Positions 7,616 to 57,988 of a stretch of 64,000 nt of DNA are shown one piece after another. The notes below the pieces were generated by a model. The model was given only the letters and a program-made list of their open reading frames with translations, was not told the origin of the DNA and ran no database searches. A program made the position numbers and the translations under genes. Location of the stretch: the sequence record MW021758.1; one strand, written 5' to 3'. Positions within the stretch are counted from its first letter, which is position 1. Each line of letters starts with the position of its first letter.

Positions 7616-7700
7616 GGTAATGCTACCCCCAATAGAATTTGTTGAAACAGATCTGTTAGAACTTAGTAATGGATCGCGACTCCATCACAACTCCAAGGTA

Positions 7701-7710
7701 GTAATATATA
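7701..7710 (-). promoter_or_regulatory. phiKZ-type early promoter motif (TATATTAC)
   Basis: Minus strand reads TATATATTAC, upstream of the 7615 gene and the nvRNAP subunit. TATATTAC is the published phiKZ early (vRNAP) promoter consensus. Confidence 0.65.
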
Positions 7711-7739
7711 CATGAACTTAAGTCGATATGGAAATAGGG

Positions 7740-35109: not shown

Positions 35110-35113
35110 ACAG

Positions 35114-35148
35114 CATAGCCAGAGGACCGTTTGGTCCTCTGGCCTATG
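35114..35148. terminator. Terminator between convergent genes
   Basis: CATAGCCAGAGGACC-GTTT-GGTCCTCTGGCCTATG. Confidence 0.8.
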
Positions 35149-35149
35149 T

Positions 35150-36367
35150 TTATTTCTTCTCAGCTTTTGCCAACCAGCCATCCAAGGTAACGTAGAAACG
35201 ATAGCCTTGGTTGTAGAAGGTATCGCCGAACTCGAAGAAACGAATAACACGAGTGTGCAGTTCGTTAATCCCGGCAACGCTGTTGATCAGCTTACGGACA
35301 TCCGGCCAATCGCTGTTGGCATCAGGATGCATCCGGTCAGCTGCATCGTTCATCTTGCTAGCGGAATCTTCGAGACGATCGCCAAGTTCTTTCAACGCAC
35401 TAACGGTACGGTCGCTGTAGAACAGTGCGCCTTTATCGTTAGTCAGCAGTTCTTCCAAGTGATGCATCATTCGCTTGATACGATCGAAGTCGTAAGCGTC
35501 AAGACGTTCACTCTTTTCTTCTGCTGTACTGATCCAGTCGCGGATAGCGCGCATCGCTTCGCGGTTATCTTCGACTTTGGTACCGAGGTAAGAAGAGAAG
35601 CGGTTGATCTCATTGATCTGGTACGCGCTCTTTTCAGGGACGTCGGCAATTTGCTTTTCAGTAACATTGCGGTTGGCTTGCAGTGATTCGATGATCTGGG
35701 TAATGTCACTCAGTTCATCAATTGCATCAACCAGGTAGCCGTGGAACGAATCGGTAGTACGTTTATACTCAACAACCATCCGATCCGCAGAATCAGTTAA
35801 GTGATTCAGTAACTGATTAAACTCACCTTCTACCTTACCAGCCAACTCTTTGAGCTGATCGTTTTCTTCGCCTTCGTTTTTAGCCACGAAGTCAGTTGGC
35901 TTTTCTTCCGCCATGCGTTCAGTCACTTTCTCAGCTTGCTGCTTACGGCGGTTCATGAACTTAGGCAGGTGCTCTTTAATCATCTTAAGCGCTTTGCGGA
36001 TAAACTCCACTAAGTTCTTAATCATGGACTTAACGACATCCACGATACGGCTAGTGACTTCTTCAACTGCAACGTTGGAGTTAGTCATAGACGGTTTCAG
36101 CGTGTAACTAGAGAGCGGGTAACGCGGGTTCAGTGGGCCAAAGTCAGACATGGACTCAAGGGCGGTCATGCTCTGGCGGTCGGCACCTTCACGTTTAATT
36201 TTTTCCAGGGTCTTTTCTAACTCAGACAACCGAGCGTTGTCACCGTTACGTTTAACGATGTACATCGACCAGGAGTCATTGAGTTCCATAGCGAGATCGC
36301 GCAAATCACGACCGTCGCTACCGATGAAGCTAAAGATACCCGGAACGGACTTTACTATCTCATCCAT
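35150..36367 (-). CDS. Helical internal head protein, probably protease-processed
   Basis: ALE-S and AVE-E sites followed by an amphipathic helix like the paralog family. Confidence 0.55.
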   Translation of the reverse strand: MDEIVKSVPGIFSFIGSDGRDLRDLAMELNDSWSMYIVKRNGDNARLSELEKTLEKIKREGADRQSMTALESMSDFGPLNPRYPLSSYTLKPSMTNSNVAVEEVTSRIVDVVKSMIKNLVEFIRKALKMIKEHLPKFMNRRKQQAEKVTERMAEEKPTDFVAKNEGEENDQLKELAGKVEGEFNQLLNHLTDSADRMVVEYKRTTDSFHGYLVDAIDELSDITQIIESLQANRNVTEKQIADVPEKSAYQINEINRFSSYLGTKVEDNREAMRAIRDWISTAEEKSERLDAYDFDRIKRMMHHLEELLTNDKGALFYSDRTVSALKELGDRLEDSASKMNDAADRMHPDANSDWPDVRKLINSVAGINELHTRVIRFFEFGDTFYNQGYRFYVTLDGWLAKAEKK

Positions 36368-48584: not shown

Positions 48585-48664
48585 TTAAAAATCCTTTGCA
48601 AAGGAGGCTAAGAAAGCCAAGGTTAAGATTTTTTAATAGAGGGTAGCTAATCCCCTACATTAGA

Positions 48665-48678
48665 GTAATATATACGTG
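48665..48678 (-). promoter_or_regulatory. Early promoter motif CACGTATATATTAC upstream of the endonuclease
   Basis: Contains TATATTAC. The same 14-mer occurs at 52778-52791. Confidence 0.7.
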
Positions 48679-52743: not shown

Positions 52744-52777
52744 CTGACATTACCTACTAATGGCCTCTATCATGGTA

Positions 52778-52791
52778 GTAATATATACGTG
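52778..52791 (-). promoter_or_regulatory. Early promoter motif CACGTATATATTAC
   Basis: About 35 nt upstream of the 52743 ATG in a divergent intergenic region. Confidence 0.7.
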
Positions 52792-54778: not shown

Positions 54779-54806
54779 ATAGGGAGAGGGTTTTCCCTCT
54801 CCCTAT
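54779..54806. terminator. Terminator between convergent genes
   Basis: ATAGGGAGAGGG-TTTT-CCCTCTCCCTAT. Confidence 0.85.
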
Positions 54807-54812
54807 GTTTGC

Positions 54813-55013
54813 TTAGTAGGTGCTGAAAGAAGAACCGCTGCACTTTGAACAGATAATCCGATCTTCGGGTTTACTGTCTTTGTAATAGCTTACGGTTAAC
54901 TTCTCTTCGCAGACATCACATTTAAACTTGAGTCCTAGCCCGGTATAATTAATGAGCGTACCGACGCTCAGTTGACTTTTCTCTACCGCAGTAATCCCAG
55001 GGAAGATAATCAT
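54813..55013 (-). CDS. Small zinc-ribbon protein
   Basis: 66 aa with CDVC and CSKC and an AGGAG RBS. Confidence 0.7.
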   Translation of the reverse strand: MIIFPGITAVEKSQLSVGTLINYTGLGLKFKCDVCEEKLTVSYYKDSKPEDRIICSKCSGSSFSTY

Positions 55014-55027
55014 CGTTACTCTCCTAA

Positions 55028-55504
55028 TTAAGGTTTCATACAGAAGTACTTAGTCTGTTCCGAGAAACCGTATCTCTTGTAAAACTTAATGGCTCGTTTA
55101 TTTCTTGACTTGACTGAAAGTGACAATTGATCTACTTGTTGGATCTTGGCAAAGTTCCTTACTTGATCAACTAGTGCAGATCCATATCCAAACCCTCTGT
55201 ACTCTCGTTGTACGTACAGATAACATATAGAAAGCCACTTAGAACTAGCGTTAACTACTGCGGTCGTGTACTCAACGAAACCTACAGGATTACCCCTCAC
55301 AAGGAGCATTAGTATTTGAGTATCGTCCACCCAACGTTCCTCTAAGGTTTTACACTCCATCTCACGACTAAGGATATCTAAGTTAGCTGACTCTTTCCAG
55401 TAAGTAGCTTCTCGTTTATCCATAATCTGGATCATCTTAAGAAGATCTGATTCGTAACCTTTAATTGCCGGATCTTTAGGATTCAATGCCAGTATGAATT
55501 TCAT
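55028..55504 (-). CDS. GNAT-family acetyltransferase
   Basis: LYVQREYRGFGYGSALVDQV and LSVKSRNKRAIKFYKRYGF. Confidence 0.85.
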   Translation of the reverse strand: MKFILALNPKDPAIKGYESDLLKMIQIMDKREATYWKESANLDILSREMECKTLEERWVDDTQILMLLVRGNPVGFVEYTTAVVNASSKWLSICYLYVQREYRGFGYGSALVDQVRNFAKIQQVDQLSLSVKSRNKRAIKFYKRYGFSEQTKYFCMKP

Positions 55505-55520
55505 AACAGTTTCCCGTTGA

Positions 55521-55552
55521 AGAAAATAAAGAGAGGGGCCGAAGCCCCTCTC
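55521..55552 (-). terminator. Terminator directly after the ~225-nt structured RNA
   Basis: GAGAGGGGC-TTCG-GCCCCTCTC-TTTATTTTCT. Confidence 0.9.
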
Positions 55553-55777
55553 GATACCGACGCGCTGCGTCTTGTGCCGGGCGCCATTTCTGGGCCTTTA
55601 TGCACCTGGGGACTCGCAGTCCCCTATTTACTCCAGCCGGCTGCAACCTGCTCAGAGTTTGGTACCACCGATCGACTGGTAAACCCCTCGTAGCCCCACT
55701 CAATTAGAGTAATGACTACGCCAGACGTACACTACCCGATCGGCGGGATTCTTCAATAAAAAAGATGCGCTAGTATC
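55553..55777 (-). ncRNA. Candidate ~225-nt multi-stem non-coding RNA
   Basis: The ends pair (GATACTAGCGC/GCGTCGGTATC). Internal helices are CCGCCGATCG/CGATCGGTGG, CGTAGTC/GGCTACG, GGGGAC/GTCCCC and GCCGG/CCGGC. No credible ORF. Confidence 0.6.
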
Positions 55778-55838: not shown

Positions 55839-56348
55839 TTAGTTAATCAGCCAAGTAACCGGATAACCTTTTACTTCTTTGGCCAACTTTCGGTAATACG
55901 CATTAAGATTAATCTTACTAGCAATCGTCGACGCGCCATCAAAGAAGACCGATGTGGCGTAGCGGTGACGTTCTAGGTCAGCGTTTAAGAATTCCCTGGC
56001 AGTGAAGCAACGATCGACTATATTGTCTTTGTCGCCATTAAGAATACCCCGTTCAACAGATGGTCCATATTTAAGACACTTGTCGAAAATGACTTTAGGG
56101 TATTTCTCAACATCCGCTAGGAAGTGTTCTTTAAAGTCGCTATTAATCAAAATTACAATTGAGTTACGATCCTCAATGAGTTTTTCGATAAGCCAATACG
56201 TAGACCCCGTTTGGCGAGGTGCCTTGAATCCTAGCGTATAAATTTCGGCTAACTCTTTTTCCCTGCTAAGCCCAAGACATGGGCCTGCATCAGGATCTAT
56301 TGAGTTTAAGAGTTCTTGCATGATCATATCGCGATTAAGGATAGTCAT
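55839..56348 (-). CDS. Small protein with a degenerate P-loop
   Basis: GFKAPRQTGST resembles terminase/helicase PRQxGK[T/S], and VFFDG is Walker-B-like. Confidence 0.6.
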   Translation of the reverse strand: MTILNRDMIMQELLNSIDPDAGPCLGLSREKELAEIYTLGFKAPRQTGSTYWLIEKLIEDRNSIVILINSDFKEHFLADVEKYPKVIFDKCLKYGPSVERGILNGDKDNIVDRCFTAREFLNADLERHRYATSVFFDGASTIASKINLNAYYRKLAKEVKGYPVTWLIN

Positions 56349-56383
56349 CGTAGAATCGTCCTATTAGTTTAACTTACTGGTTT

Positions 56384-56462
56384 TTAGGTACGCGGAATCC
56401 ATTCCACAAAGTCTTTAGGCAGCGGGCAGATGAATGCGGCCACTTGAGACTTACGTACCTAA
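56384..56462 (-). ncRNA. tRNA-sized three-way-junction RNA candidate
   Basis: 9-bp closing stem TTAGGTACG/CGTACCTAA, inner stem AAGTCT/AGACTT, and 3' hairpin GGAA-TGGA-TTCC. Confidence 0.45.
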
Positions 56463-56463
56463 T

Positions 56464-56590
56464 TGGGTGACGCCCCCAGGAATCGCACCTGGCTTTCCGG
56501 TGCTGTTGCCGCGATCTCGCCACAACAGTTGCTGGCACTTAGCCCCCACCGCGCCCAGCTGGCGCAGGCTGCTTTTTACGTGCAGGCGTC
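56464..56590 (-). ncRNA. tRNA-like RNA, copy 1 (acceptor stem + T arm + CCCA, ~90-nt structured insert)
   Basis: GACGCCT...CCAGG-TGCGATT-CCTGG-GGGCGTC-A-CCCA. Confidence 0.7.
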
Positions 56591-56700
56591 ATTGTTCTTT
56601 TAACCGACAAACAGAAGTTGTTTACCGATCAGTTTAACTTCCTCATGGTTTGGCTATCAAAAACCTTAAATAGTAGATAGCGATCTTCATGTTAGCTAAA

Positions 56701-56810
56701 TGGATTACACACCACAACACCCGATAGATGGTAAGTGGATCTCAGGTATGCGTTTAAGCCCTGACCTGTTGCACCCCGGTTGATTAACGTAGTGTGTAAT
56801 ATCGTACCCC
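56701..56810 (-). ncRNA. Candidate CCA-ended structured RNA
   Basis: TTACACAC/GTGTGTAA closing stem followed by T-CCA, with internal CAGGT/ACCTG. No clear T arm. Confidence 0.4.
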
Positions 56811-56892
56811 AGACATCTTCCGTTCTCAGGTAGTAACGGGGGCAGACCGCTATGATTAGTAGCAGTCATTTCACCGATCTCTTAGGATGTCT
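56811..56892 (-). ncRNA. Degenerate tRNA-like unit
   Basis: 7-bp AGACATC/GATGTCT. An 8-bp arm GACTGCTA/TAGCGGTC closes the 7-nt loop CTAATCA, and there is a CCGTT/AACGG arm. Confidence 0.45.
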
Positions 56893-56900
56893 ATTAACTA

Positions 56901-56986
56901 GATCGAGAGTAGGGATCGAACCTACGTAGTCTTACGGACGTATCCGCCGTCGAATTCCTCACTAGGTTTAAGTAGACTATCTCGAT
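56901..56986 (-). ncRNA. tRNA-like unit with a canonical T arm but no D/anticodon arms
   Basis: ATCGAGA/TCTCGAT acceptor, GTAGG-TTCGATC-CCTAC T arm, and inner stem TAGTCT/AGACTA. Confidence 0.55.
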
Positions 56987-56999
56987 AAAACGTTAAGAA

Positions 57000-57063
57000 G
57001 TCCTCACTGCAGATTCGTTTCACCACAGGTTGACTACAATCAACCTCCCTCTACAATGAGGAC
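57000..57063 (-). ncRNA. Candidate small structured RNA
   Basis: 14-bp stem GTCCTCATTGTAGA/TCTGCAGTGAGGAC (with G-U pairs) enclosing AGGTTGA/TCAACCT and a GGTGAAAC segment. Confidence 0.45.
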
Positions 57064-57067
57064 ATCA

Positions 57068-57193
57068 TGGGAGACACTCCTCCGAATTTCACGGAGTTAT
57101 AAAGGCTGCTCTAGCTAACCATTGGTCGCTATGTATTGGCTGCCAGTCCTCTTTTTCTGGGTGCAGTACCCAGGGCTTTGGGGGACAAGTGTC
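57068..57193 (-). ncRNA. tRNA-like RNA, copy 2
   Basis: GACACTT...CTCCG-TGAAATT-CGGAG-GAGTGTC-T-CCCA, with the same architecture and length as 56464-56590. Confidence 0.7.
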
Positions 57194-57287
57194 ATTGTTA
57201 TCGCACCCCAATTAACTGTATCTACCGTAACTTAAGTAGTAGGGAATTAAATGGGACGACTTTACCCGAACGTCTTCGGGCTTTGTT

Positions 57288-57366
57288 TGGGAACCTGAGG
57301 AAGGATTTGAACCTCCAACGGCCGTCTTAGCTGGACGGTGCTCTATTCAGTTGAGCTACTCGGTTC
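57288..57366 (-). tRNA. Atypical tRNA with a GCT anticodon (nominally Ser)
   Basis: Cloverleaf with D stem GCTC/GAGC, anticodon arm CCGTC-CAGCTAA-GACGG, T arm GGAGG-TTCAAAT-CCTTC and an encoded CCA. Several non-canonical features. Confidence 0.7.
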
Positions 57367-57373
57367 ATTGATT

Positions 57374-57458
57374 TGGTGGTAGGTGATGGACTCGAACCAT
57401 CGAAGCCCGAAGGCGACAGATTTACAGTCTGTTCTCGTTGCCGCTTGAGTAACCTACC
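57374..57458 (-). tRNA. trnY: tRNA-Tyr(GTA)
   Basis: GGTAGGT/ACCTACC acceptor, ACAGA-CTGTAAA-TCTGT, long variable arm, GATGG-TTCGAGT-CCATC, and A-CCA. Confidence 0.95.
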
Positions 57459-57472
57459 AGGAATTCGTCTTG

Positions 57473-57624
57473 ATTGGAGTAGGCGCGTAATGTCGCCTCG
57501 TGTTAGTTGCTCGCATCTATCATGCGCTACCTTTAAGGCATTCGAACCCTAAACCAACGCACTAGTGTGCGGAAGTTGTTCCACAACCCGGACGATTGAG
57601 ATCGTACCCTTAAAGCTCTCCAAT
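57473..57624 (-). ncRNA. Candidate ~150-nt multi-branched RNA
   Basis: Closing stem ATTGGAG/CTCCAAT, an 8-bp CTTTAAGG/CCTTAAAG helix, five hairpins and a GGTTCGAAT segment. Confidence 0.6.
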
Positions 57625-57761
57625 AGTTAGTGGGGATCCATCCCCGCTTGTAGCTGAATCTCACTTAGTTACCGACAATCGACCCTGGAGTTAATTGAAC
57701 TAAATGATTACTTGATGCAGCTTCTACATACTTAAACTTGTTGCGTAAAAAAAGATCTAAA

Positions 57762-57920: not shown

Positions 57921-57988
57921 GGTGGTGTTTCCTCTTAATTGTACATAAACAACATAGACCGGCCAGGTTTCCCCAGCCGGCTTATGGA

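Follow-up and report, generated by a model that had tools for sequence, protein, structure and literature searches.

Outside their tRNA genes, the tRNA islands of jumbo phages are essentially unannotated, and a GC-rich stretch that closes one such island raises two questions: is it a folded RNA maintained by selection (or spacer, or a pair of small open reading frames), and, if it is an RNA, does it act on its own account or upon the gene that follows it? The stretch is found in the Serratia jumbo phage vB_SmaM_Yaphecito (MW021758; Moabitevirus), which is recognized as a phiKZ-like phage because split multisubunit RNA-polymerase genes have been annotated by its depositors in the window (this term denoting throughout the whole 64,000 nucleotides of that record that were analyzed). 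The minus strand is the coding strand of all genes around the locus, and the analysis was carried out on it; the helices named in an earlier reading of the same DNA (the ‘original prediction’), in which the RNA was first proposed, correspond to minus-strand sequence written 5'-3'.

The locus and its neighbors

The proposed position of the RNA, between a small P-loop gene and a GNAT gene, proved correct. Upstream lies a 169-aa ORF (55839-56348, minus strand), which encodes a P-loop-like protein of family phrog_2586; downstream lies a GNAT acetyltransferase gene (55028-55504, minus strand; Pfam PF00583 Acetyltransf_1, E=5e-16), near which is found a gene for a Zn-ribbon (Zn-finger) protein (54813-55013, minus strand). 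The ‘P-loop’ label of the upstream gene is justified at the level of its motif and receives no match in Pfam. Distant homologs of the 169-aa protein (in SA002, pEa_SNUABM_37 and AH06) display a canonical Walker A sequence, PRQ[TS]GKT; the Moabitevirus copies read PRQTGST or SRQSGSS, such that they lack the Walker A lysine and may be inactive as ATPases. The protein is also diverging fast, with 43% aa and 59% nt identity to its counterpart in phage Totoro, which represents one of the two diverged Moabitevirus lineages (all remaining isolates forming the other). Genes of family phrog_2586 are embedded in tRNA islands in each of four phage groups.

The GNAT protein is 75% identical in amino acid sequence to its Totoro orthologue. 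In two isolates, 2050HW and ParM-25, an in-frame amber stop (GAG to TAG) is found at codon 50 of the gene (L003 1835-2311 and L081 935-1411), which is free of it in the window and in phages Moabite, Kodama and BUCT660.

Fold of the RNA

The core of the RNA extends from 55747 to 55553 on the minus strand (~195 nt), and it is GC-rich as had been claimed: 58% in the core itself and 51-57% in segments of 200 nt, versus ~40-45% nearby. A degree of structure beyond chance was recovered for the stretch 55777-55553 (minus), which displays an MFE of -96.5 kcal/mol (z=-4.73, with none of 200 shuffled sequences as stable); the plus strand of the same region reaches a z-score of only -2.58. The Totoro RNA gives a z-score of -5.2 (again, 0/200 shuffles were as stable), and the same fold is predicted independently in both lineages. 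The fold consists of P1, a long and irregular hairpin, and, after it, a compact five-way junction formed by P2-P6 and bearing a GAAA tetraloop. The consensus fold described here was obtained from an alignment of five distinct sequence versions, and was later refined.

P1 (55665-55746, minus), an irregular hairpin of 82 nt and 33 pairs (96% paired across the five sequences), is immediately preceded on its 5' side by an invariant AU-rich block, AUCUUUUUUAUUGAAGAAU (55748-55766, minus). Its basal helix has 11 bp, and its inner helices are CGUAGUC/GGCUACG and ACUC/GAGU; it contains 1x1 mismatches that are conserved, and the loop at its apex, UAAUU (55702-55706), is invariant. The 5' domain of the original prediction, in which a 10-bp helix encloses these same two inner helices, is thereby reproduced in both the MFE structure and the consensus fold, where the enclosing helix, CCGCCGAUCG(G)/(U)CGAUCGGUGG, has 10-11 bp. 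Three pairs of P1 display double compensatory changes (C-G to U-A, U-A to C-G and A-U to G-C), and five more display compatible changes on one side, G-C to G-U among them.

The five-way junction is closed by P2, the 5' strand of which, UACC (55661-55664, minus), abuts P1 and pairs with GGUA (55555-55558, minus) in the MFE structures of both lineages. P3 (55630-55658, minus; ACUCU.AGC.GGU...GCC.GCU.GGAGU) is a hairpin of 11 pairs, 98% paired, with one U-G to C-G change. P4 (55608-55624, minus; GGGGACU-GCG-AGUCCCC), also identified in a hairpin scan, has seven pairs that are 100% paired, with one G-C to G-U change in Totoro. P5 (55574-55605, minus) is a two-part hairpin, GUGC...GCAC, of ten pairs (100% paired), and is capped by the GAAA tetraloop (55587-55590); in Totoro the pair closing that tetraloop is changed from A-U to C-G and GAAA is kept. 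P6 (55559-55571, minus; GACGC-AGC-GCGUC) has its top pair changed from C-G to U-A in Totoro, and a loop that is free to vary.

The earlier account of this 3' domain stands in part. Its hairpin GGGGAC-UGCGA-GUCCCC is present; its GCCGG/CCGGC helix, though still conceivable, is chosen by neither the MFE structure nor the consensus in either lineage, and the bases concerned fall in separate hairpins, P3 and P5, of the consensus fold. A pairing of the two ends of the RNA (GAUACU/GGUAUC), which had likewise been put forward, occurs in the MFE structure of the window but is lost in Totoro, where its 5' half is changed. In its place, the 3' domain is closed by the short internal helix UACC/GGUA.

Selection on base pairing

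Across the five distinct sequences, the 70 pairs of the model are 98% paired, and 11 of the 16 variable pairs remain paired in every sequence. Compensatory double changes are found in five pairs (three in P1, one at the GAAA-closing pair of P5 and one at the top of P6), a number reached by one of 500 shuffles; six further pairs have undergone one-sided changes to another standard pair, several of them from G-C to G-U. When, as a control, the pairing partners were slid by one to three columns, pairing dropped to 33-44%, with at most one double change. Because the G-U pairs and the G-C to G-U changes fit the minus strand only, the RNA can be assigned to that strand.

The alignment contains only two diverged lineages (Totoro versus the rest), and all five double changes trace to one branch; statistical covariation in the style of R-scape cannot, with a single divergent branch, be established. 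Since P2 and the greater part of P3-P5 do not vary, they carry no information in this respect; P2 in particular contributes no covariation evidence. At the level of overall conservation, the RNA core and its Totoro counterpart share 83% nucleotide identity, versus 72% for the GNAT gene, 76% for the 3' part of the helicase gene, 59% for the P-loop gene and 57% for the Zn-finger gene. Both of the generic marks of a conserved structured ncRNA, compensatory changes and conservation above that of the neighborhood, are therefore found along that one branch. Judged by its pattern of substitution, the region is a genuine non-coding RNA of the minus strand, maintained by selection.

Coding potential

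Two ORFs of the window overlap the RNA: one of 75 aa (55476-55703, minus), named in the original prediction as the competing explanation of the sequence, and one of 58 aa on the plus strand. Annotators of phage Moabite also called two hypothetical ORFs of 34-35 aa over the RNA in its GenBank entry (L001 3502-3606 and 3601-3708, which correspond to 55501-55605 on the minus strand and 55600-55707 on the plus strand of the window); neither is conserved in Totoro, and to judge from this comparison both are probably mis-calls.

The existence of these frames, and the fact that annotators called two of them, is what a protein-coding explanation has in its favor. The 75-aa ORF, however, is not conserved: in Totoro it is frameshifted by a 1-nt indel located 10 nt into the ORF, and the largest ORFs that overlap the region there are of 24-33 aa and lie at non-equivalent positions. 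Its start codon is a TTG within the P1 helix, no ORF overlapping the RNA is matched in Pfam, and the substitutions in the region follow base pairing. Since the ORFs are unconserved and the substitutions keep the pairing, the locus is read as a selected RNA rather than as a gene for a peptide, and the coding explanation is barely credible.

Known families and distribution

The RNA falls outside known families, as had been suggested: apart from the terminator hairpin, Rfam is negative both at gathering thresholds and, under lax filters, at E<=10. At gathering thresholds, two tRNAs elsewhere were all that the full window returned, and at E<=10 a 2.5-kb and a 276-nt scan yielded only the terminator hairpin, at 12-15 bits versus thresholds of 56-229. 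Rfam 15 is taken here to cover tmRNA, RNase P, group I and II introns, 6S, Y RNA-like RNAs, riboswitches and T-box elements, as well as glmS, GOLLD, ROOL, raiA, HEARO and retron msr. The reported absence of tmRNA features agrees with ARAGORN, which makes no tRNA or tmRNA call over the RNA; its only calls in the region are tRNA-Ser and tRNA-Tyr (57288-57458), ~1.6 kb upstream.

Several more specific identities were considered and rejected. Neither P1 nor the 3' domain can be read as tRNA-like, because both are without a T-arm (none is found in the sequence before the 3' strand of P1) and because the junction is five-way. A T-box reading was prompted by the 9-mer GGUGGUACC, which matches the T-box core sequence and is the one T-box feature shared; it was set aside on the grounds of anatomy (the 9-mer forms the 3' strand of P1 and P2, and is separated from the terminator by ~110 nt and four hairpins) and of the absence of an Rfam match at E<=10. 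The idea of a glmS-like ribozyme arose from the name ‘glucosamine-6-P N-acetyltransferase’ that some annotators have given to the GNAT, and was rejected because Rfam returned no match and because comparison with PDB shows this GNAT to be a generic one.

Among phages, blastn locates the RNA in ten Moabitevirus records, representing seven phages, and nowhere else; nine of the ten are 98.8-100% identical over the RNA and the tenth, Totoro, is 83% identical. No paralog was found in the window by blastn or CM, the RNA having a single place in the Yaphecito genome. The CM R1 gave no match to the RNA at the loci of the P-loop homologs (SA002, pEa_SNUABM_37 and AH06), nor was any found in plasmids and E. 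coli genomes. In IMG/VR, two pattern scans with CM, as well as a protein-anchored scan, returned 2050HW only. The first pair of pattern scans of JGI metagenomes and GTDB returned nothing, and the second pair returned 23 loci, all of which were rejected by the CM. In FBKp24 (a Klebsiella jumbo phage considered further below), with CM filters off, the best match scores 5.3 bits (E=0.46) and is not significant; it corresponds to the apex of P1, at a plausible distance from the terminator. A search of the literature returned nothing on the RNA, the only related mentions in the Moabite genome note being two tRNAs and a terminator prediction (PMC6639629). The RNA is a new candidate family, of a known kind of RNA, in one genus only.

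Such a narrow distribution (with IMG/VR beyond 2050HW, JGI metagenomes and GTDB all negative) is what would be expected of a functionless relic, such as a degraded tRNA-like gene, an intron or a mobile insert, with its conservation reflecting recent common ancestry; the fluidity of the tRNA island, described below, also fits such an origin. Yet the RNA is more conserved than the adjacent coding sequences at equal divergence, its substitutions preserve pairing, and it is without a T-arm or cloverleaf, an ARAGORN call or a paralog in the window. An origin of this kind, with no function retained, is thus highly improbable. The absence of a family match, the broken ORF, the compensatory changes and the conservation above that of flanking coding sequences together support what the original prediction had inferred: a phage non-coding RNA, either stand-alone or derived from a 3' UTR, outside known families.

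Ends and transcription

The strong UUCG terminator that had been described directly after the RNA is found both by a terminator scan and in the Moabite annotation. It occupies 55523-55552 (minus) and consists of a 9-bp stem, GAGAGGGGC/GCCCCUCUC, a UUCG loop and the tail UUUAUUUU; its sequence is identical in Totoro, and 18 nt separate the end of its tail from the ATG of the GNAT gene. The 3' end of the RNA is set by this intrinsic terminator.

Strong hairpin terminators, often UUCG-looped, are the usual unit endings in the phage. Many of them end in (C)UAUGUU or (C)UAUUUUG and not in a plain U-run, as do those at 35110-35150, 54779-54806 and 57958-57981, and some are bidirectional between convergent genes. 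The notion that ‘terminator + CTATG’ constitutes a late promoter was rejected, because the identical tail follows terminators located between convergent genes.

At the other end of the RNA, the AU-rich block at 55748-55766 has the same base at all 19 positions in the window and in Totoro, whereas the 91-nt upstream spacer is otherwise ~72% identical. The block is not recurrent in the window (three matches at <=3 mismatches, versus 0.96 expected). By inference, the block may mark the 5' end of the RNA, where it would serve as an RNase E-type processing site or else as a phage promoter. No sigma-70-like site was found on the minus strand ahead of the RNA, and the early-like motif GTATATATTAC, together with (C)UAUGUU/(C)UAUUUUG tails, is absent between the upstream ORF and the RNA. 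That motif, which is early-promoter-like by comparison with phiKZ, occurs three times in intergenic regions of the window (e.g. 7700-7715, 48650-48665 and 52775-52790). The AU-rich block could be a phage promoter of a type that escapes recognition, and the RNA may represent either the 3' end of an island transcript that is cut at the block or a transcript that is started there.

The same surroundings could be read as those of a passive 3'-UTR element, which would protect the tRNA-island/P-loop transcript from 3' exonucleases and insulate the GNAT gene from read-through, with no function of its own. The RNA does follow the P-loop ORF directly and shares its strand, no promoter motif being recognized between the two, and it ends in a strong terminator of the kind with which this phage normally ends its units. 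For that purpose, however, the terminator alone would be enough: a 195-nt body of five helices exceeds the needs of protection, that body displays compensatory changes, a GNRA tetraloop and an apical loop that does not vary, and it is 83% identical between lineages where the ORF that it would protect is 59% identical (nt). A purely passive element is, on balance, unlikely.

Relation to the GNAT gene

The anatomy of the locus (a structured domain, an intrinsic terminator, 18 nt and then the GNAT ATG) is also that of a cis-regulatory leader, riboswitch-like or protein-dependent, which would set transcription past the terminator and into the GNAT/Zn-finger operon. The order of RNA, terminator and GNAT gene is kept in both Moabitevirus lineages, and no early-type phage promoter motif is found between the terminator and the GNAT ATG. 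Folding experiments in silico do not bear this possibility out: when transcripts ending after the terminator loop, and so before the 3' arm of the terminator, were folded for the window and for Totoro, the body was the same and the 5' arm was essentially free, with trivial local pairs only. Nothing, in other words, pairs alternatively with the terminator; the body and the terminator arm fold independently in both phages, and hence no antiterminator is predicted.

A second line of evidence comes from GNAT orthologues (~55% aa identity) in Klebsiella jumbo phages of the FBKp24 group (Maaswegvirus), where the gene is again located downstream of a tRNA island, beside a SNF2 helicase. In FBKp24 the terminator and spacer before the GNAT gene align to those of the window (nhmmer), and the terminator covaries within the group; upstream of it stands a conserved, structured RNA of ~135 nt (z=-4.6). 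The repeated placement of a structured RNA, with a homologous terminator and spacer, ahead of the same gene would favor a leader, but the body of the FBKp24 RNA is unrelated in sequence to that of the window. A terminator that is kept while the RNA body before it is unrelated is the opposite of the pattern that a shared sensor would leave. Neither an exclusive pairing between terminator and antiterminator nor a sensor domain conserved with its gene across taxa, both of which characterize riboswitches, is found here; Rfam returns no riboswitch match, and the GNAT, being generic, offers no clue to a ligand. The stop codon within the GNAT gene of two isolates, in which the RNA is intact, points in the same direction, as a weak argument given that those lineages are young. 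Regulation of the GNAT operon by such a leader is therefore a distinctly unlikely account of the RNA.

The tRNA island and related jumbo phages

The RNA closes a non-coding island of ~1.3 kb (56349-57660) that contains tRNA-Tyr and tRNA-Ser, along with other blocks conserved in Totoro at 85-91% identity. The island and its vicinity display additional features. A second GC-rich non-coding element (56466-56590, minus) shortly precedes the 169-aa ORF. In it, an acceptor-like helix, GACGCC/GGCGUC, with ACC after it, is combined with a T-arm-like hairpin, CCAGG-UGCGAUU-CCUGG, beside the 3' strand of that helix, ~110 nt being inserted between. Its ends, AUGACGCCUG ... GGGGGCGUCACC, are also found in FBKp24 (L082 2757-2886) and in KpLz_1_41, and thus in two genera; the element is called by neither ARAGORN nor Rfam, and the block 56288-56603 is 91% identical in Totoro. 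A tRNA-like gene at ~56905-56990 (minus), also uncalled by ARAGORN, combines a 7-bp acceptor-like helix, AUCGAGA/UCUCGAU, with a canonical T-arm, GUAGG-UUCGAUC-CCUAC; identity to Totoro is 90% over the surrounding stretch 56901-57096, and identity to Klebsiella phage N1M2 is 86% over 56704-56988.

In Totoro (L002 4014-4619), an HNH nuclease gene lies beside tRNA-Ser in place of the tRNA-Tyr of the window, and the segments 56604-56900 and 57097-57282 of the window are without a counterpart. With blocks present in one lineage and absent from the other, the content of the island is fluid.

In Maaswegvirus, two terminator-ended and highly structured non-coding RNAs lie between the tRNA island and the GNAT orthologue (in FBKp24, where stretches of this kind fill the syntenic island, L082 3334-3480 and 2885-3115, with z-scores of -4.6 and -6.4); of the two, the RNA adjacent to the GNAT gene hardly varies among four phages (L082 and L083-L085) whose identity is ~82% elsewhere. 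In Erwinia phage AH06, the region downstream of the P-loop homolog is likewise highly structured (z=-5.3).

Proposed function

In the best reading of the locus, to which we would give an even chance, the RNA that closes the tRNA island and is ended by a terminator acts in trans as a stable structured molecule. According to this reading, the RNA would be released by cleavage of a long island/P-loop transcript at the AU-rich block 5' of P1 or, alternatively, would originate at a promoter within that block; its 3' end would be formed at the intrinsic terminator (55552-55523), and it would then act in trans, most plausibly (to judge from its architecture) as a scaffold or decoy that binds a protein. 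It would be neither an mRNA nor a ligand-sensing switch. A role in trans is favored because the body and the terminator are independent modules with no antiterminator, and independence from the GNAT gene is weakly suggested by the amber stop in 2050HW and ParM-25, where the RNA is intact. The distance of 18 nt between the terminator and the GNAT start, and the kept gene order, are equally compatible with a role in cis.

A bolder proposal, advanced only tentatively, is that a new class of trans-acting structured RNAs might exist in phiKZ-like tRNA islands, with this RNA as its founding member. The compact fold of P1 plus the five-way junction would bind a protein of the host or of the phage (such as a factor related to translation or to tRNA, or a defense nuclease) and affect infection, with sequence-divergent counterparts occupying the same slot in Maaswegvirus and Agricanvirus. 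The neighboring blocks of the island, together with the syntenic islands of Klebsiella and Erwinia phages, suggest that structured island RNAs are a general phenomenon.

The weight of the finding is at present limited by the restricted distribution of the RNA and by the lack of an assigned function. Nevertheless, at least one stretch of the kind that lies unannotated in jumbo-phage tRNA islands represents a selected, folded RNA, rather than spacer or mis-called small ORFs, and, being compact (~195 nt), clonable and defined at its 3' end, it provides a candidate with which to probe the role of phage island RNAs, a question shared with the much larger GOLLD and ROOL RNAs and with the stable RNAs of T4.

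Comparison with known RNA systems

With riboswitch and T-box attenuators the present RNA shares a structured domain followed by an intrinsic terminator shortly before a gene (and, with the T-box core sequence, the 9-mer GGUGGUACC). It differs from them in that no competing antiterminator is predicted and no riboswitch or T-box model in Rfam is matched at E<=10.

The type II 3'-UTR-derived sRNAs of enterobacteria, such as CpxQ and SroC, are short, Hfq-dependent and act by seed pairing. Like them, the present RNA would share the terminator of an upstream mRNA and would be excised at an AU-rich, single-stranded site; its location on the same strand, the lack of a recognized promoter and the invariant AU-rich block would all be compatible with that anatomy. 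Unlike CpxQ and SroC, it folds into a large and compact structure in which no seed is evident.

Among phiKZ-like phages, terminator-bounded sRNAs have been mapped, for example sRNA005 of 201phi2-1, corresponding to the leader of phiKZ gp182 (PMC11512511). The features in common are a jumbo phage with its own RNA polymerases, an intrinsic terminator just before a gene, and conservation among relatives. Those sRNAs, however, lie upstream of a tail gene and were identified by transcript mapping, whereas the present RNA has a different neighbor and is recognized from sequence.

The tRNA cluster of phage T4 encodes two stable RNAs, C and D (species 1 and 2), which mature from the cluster transcript and are small (~120-140 nt), structured and of unknown function. 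They are comparable, by description, as structured RNAs at a phage tRNA cluster; they are smaller than the present RNA, and the matches of blastn to T4 are terminator-like only.

Similar in setting are GOLLD and ROOL, the large ornate RNAs of phages and prophages. Both are complex, multi-helix and without an assigned function, and both are described as ‘often near tRNA islands’ (bioRxiv 10.1101/2024.12.08.627333). The present RNA resembles them in being phage-borne and multi-helix and in closing a tRNA island. It differs from them in size, GOLLD and ROOL being three to four times larger (~580-800 nt), and in Rfam 15, which presumably includes both models and matches only the terminator hairpin here. 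GOLLD and ROOL form homo-oligomeric cages.
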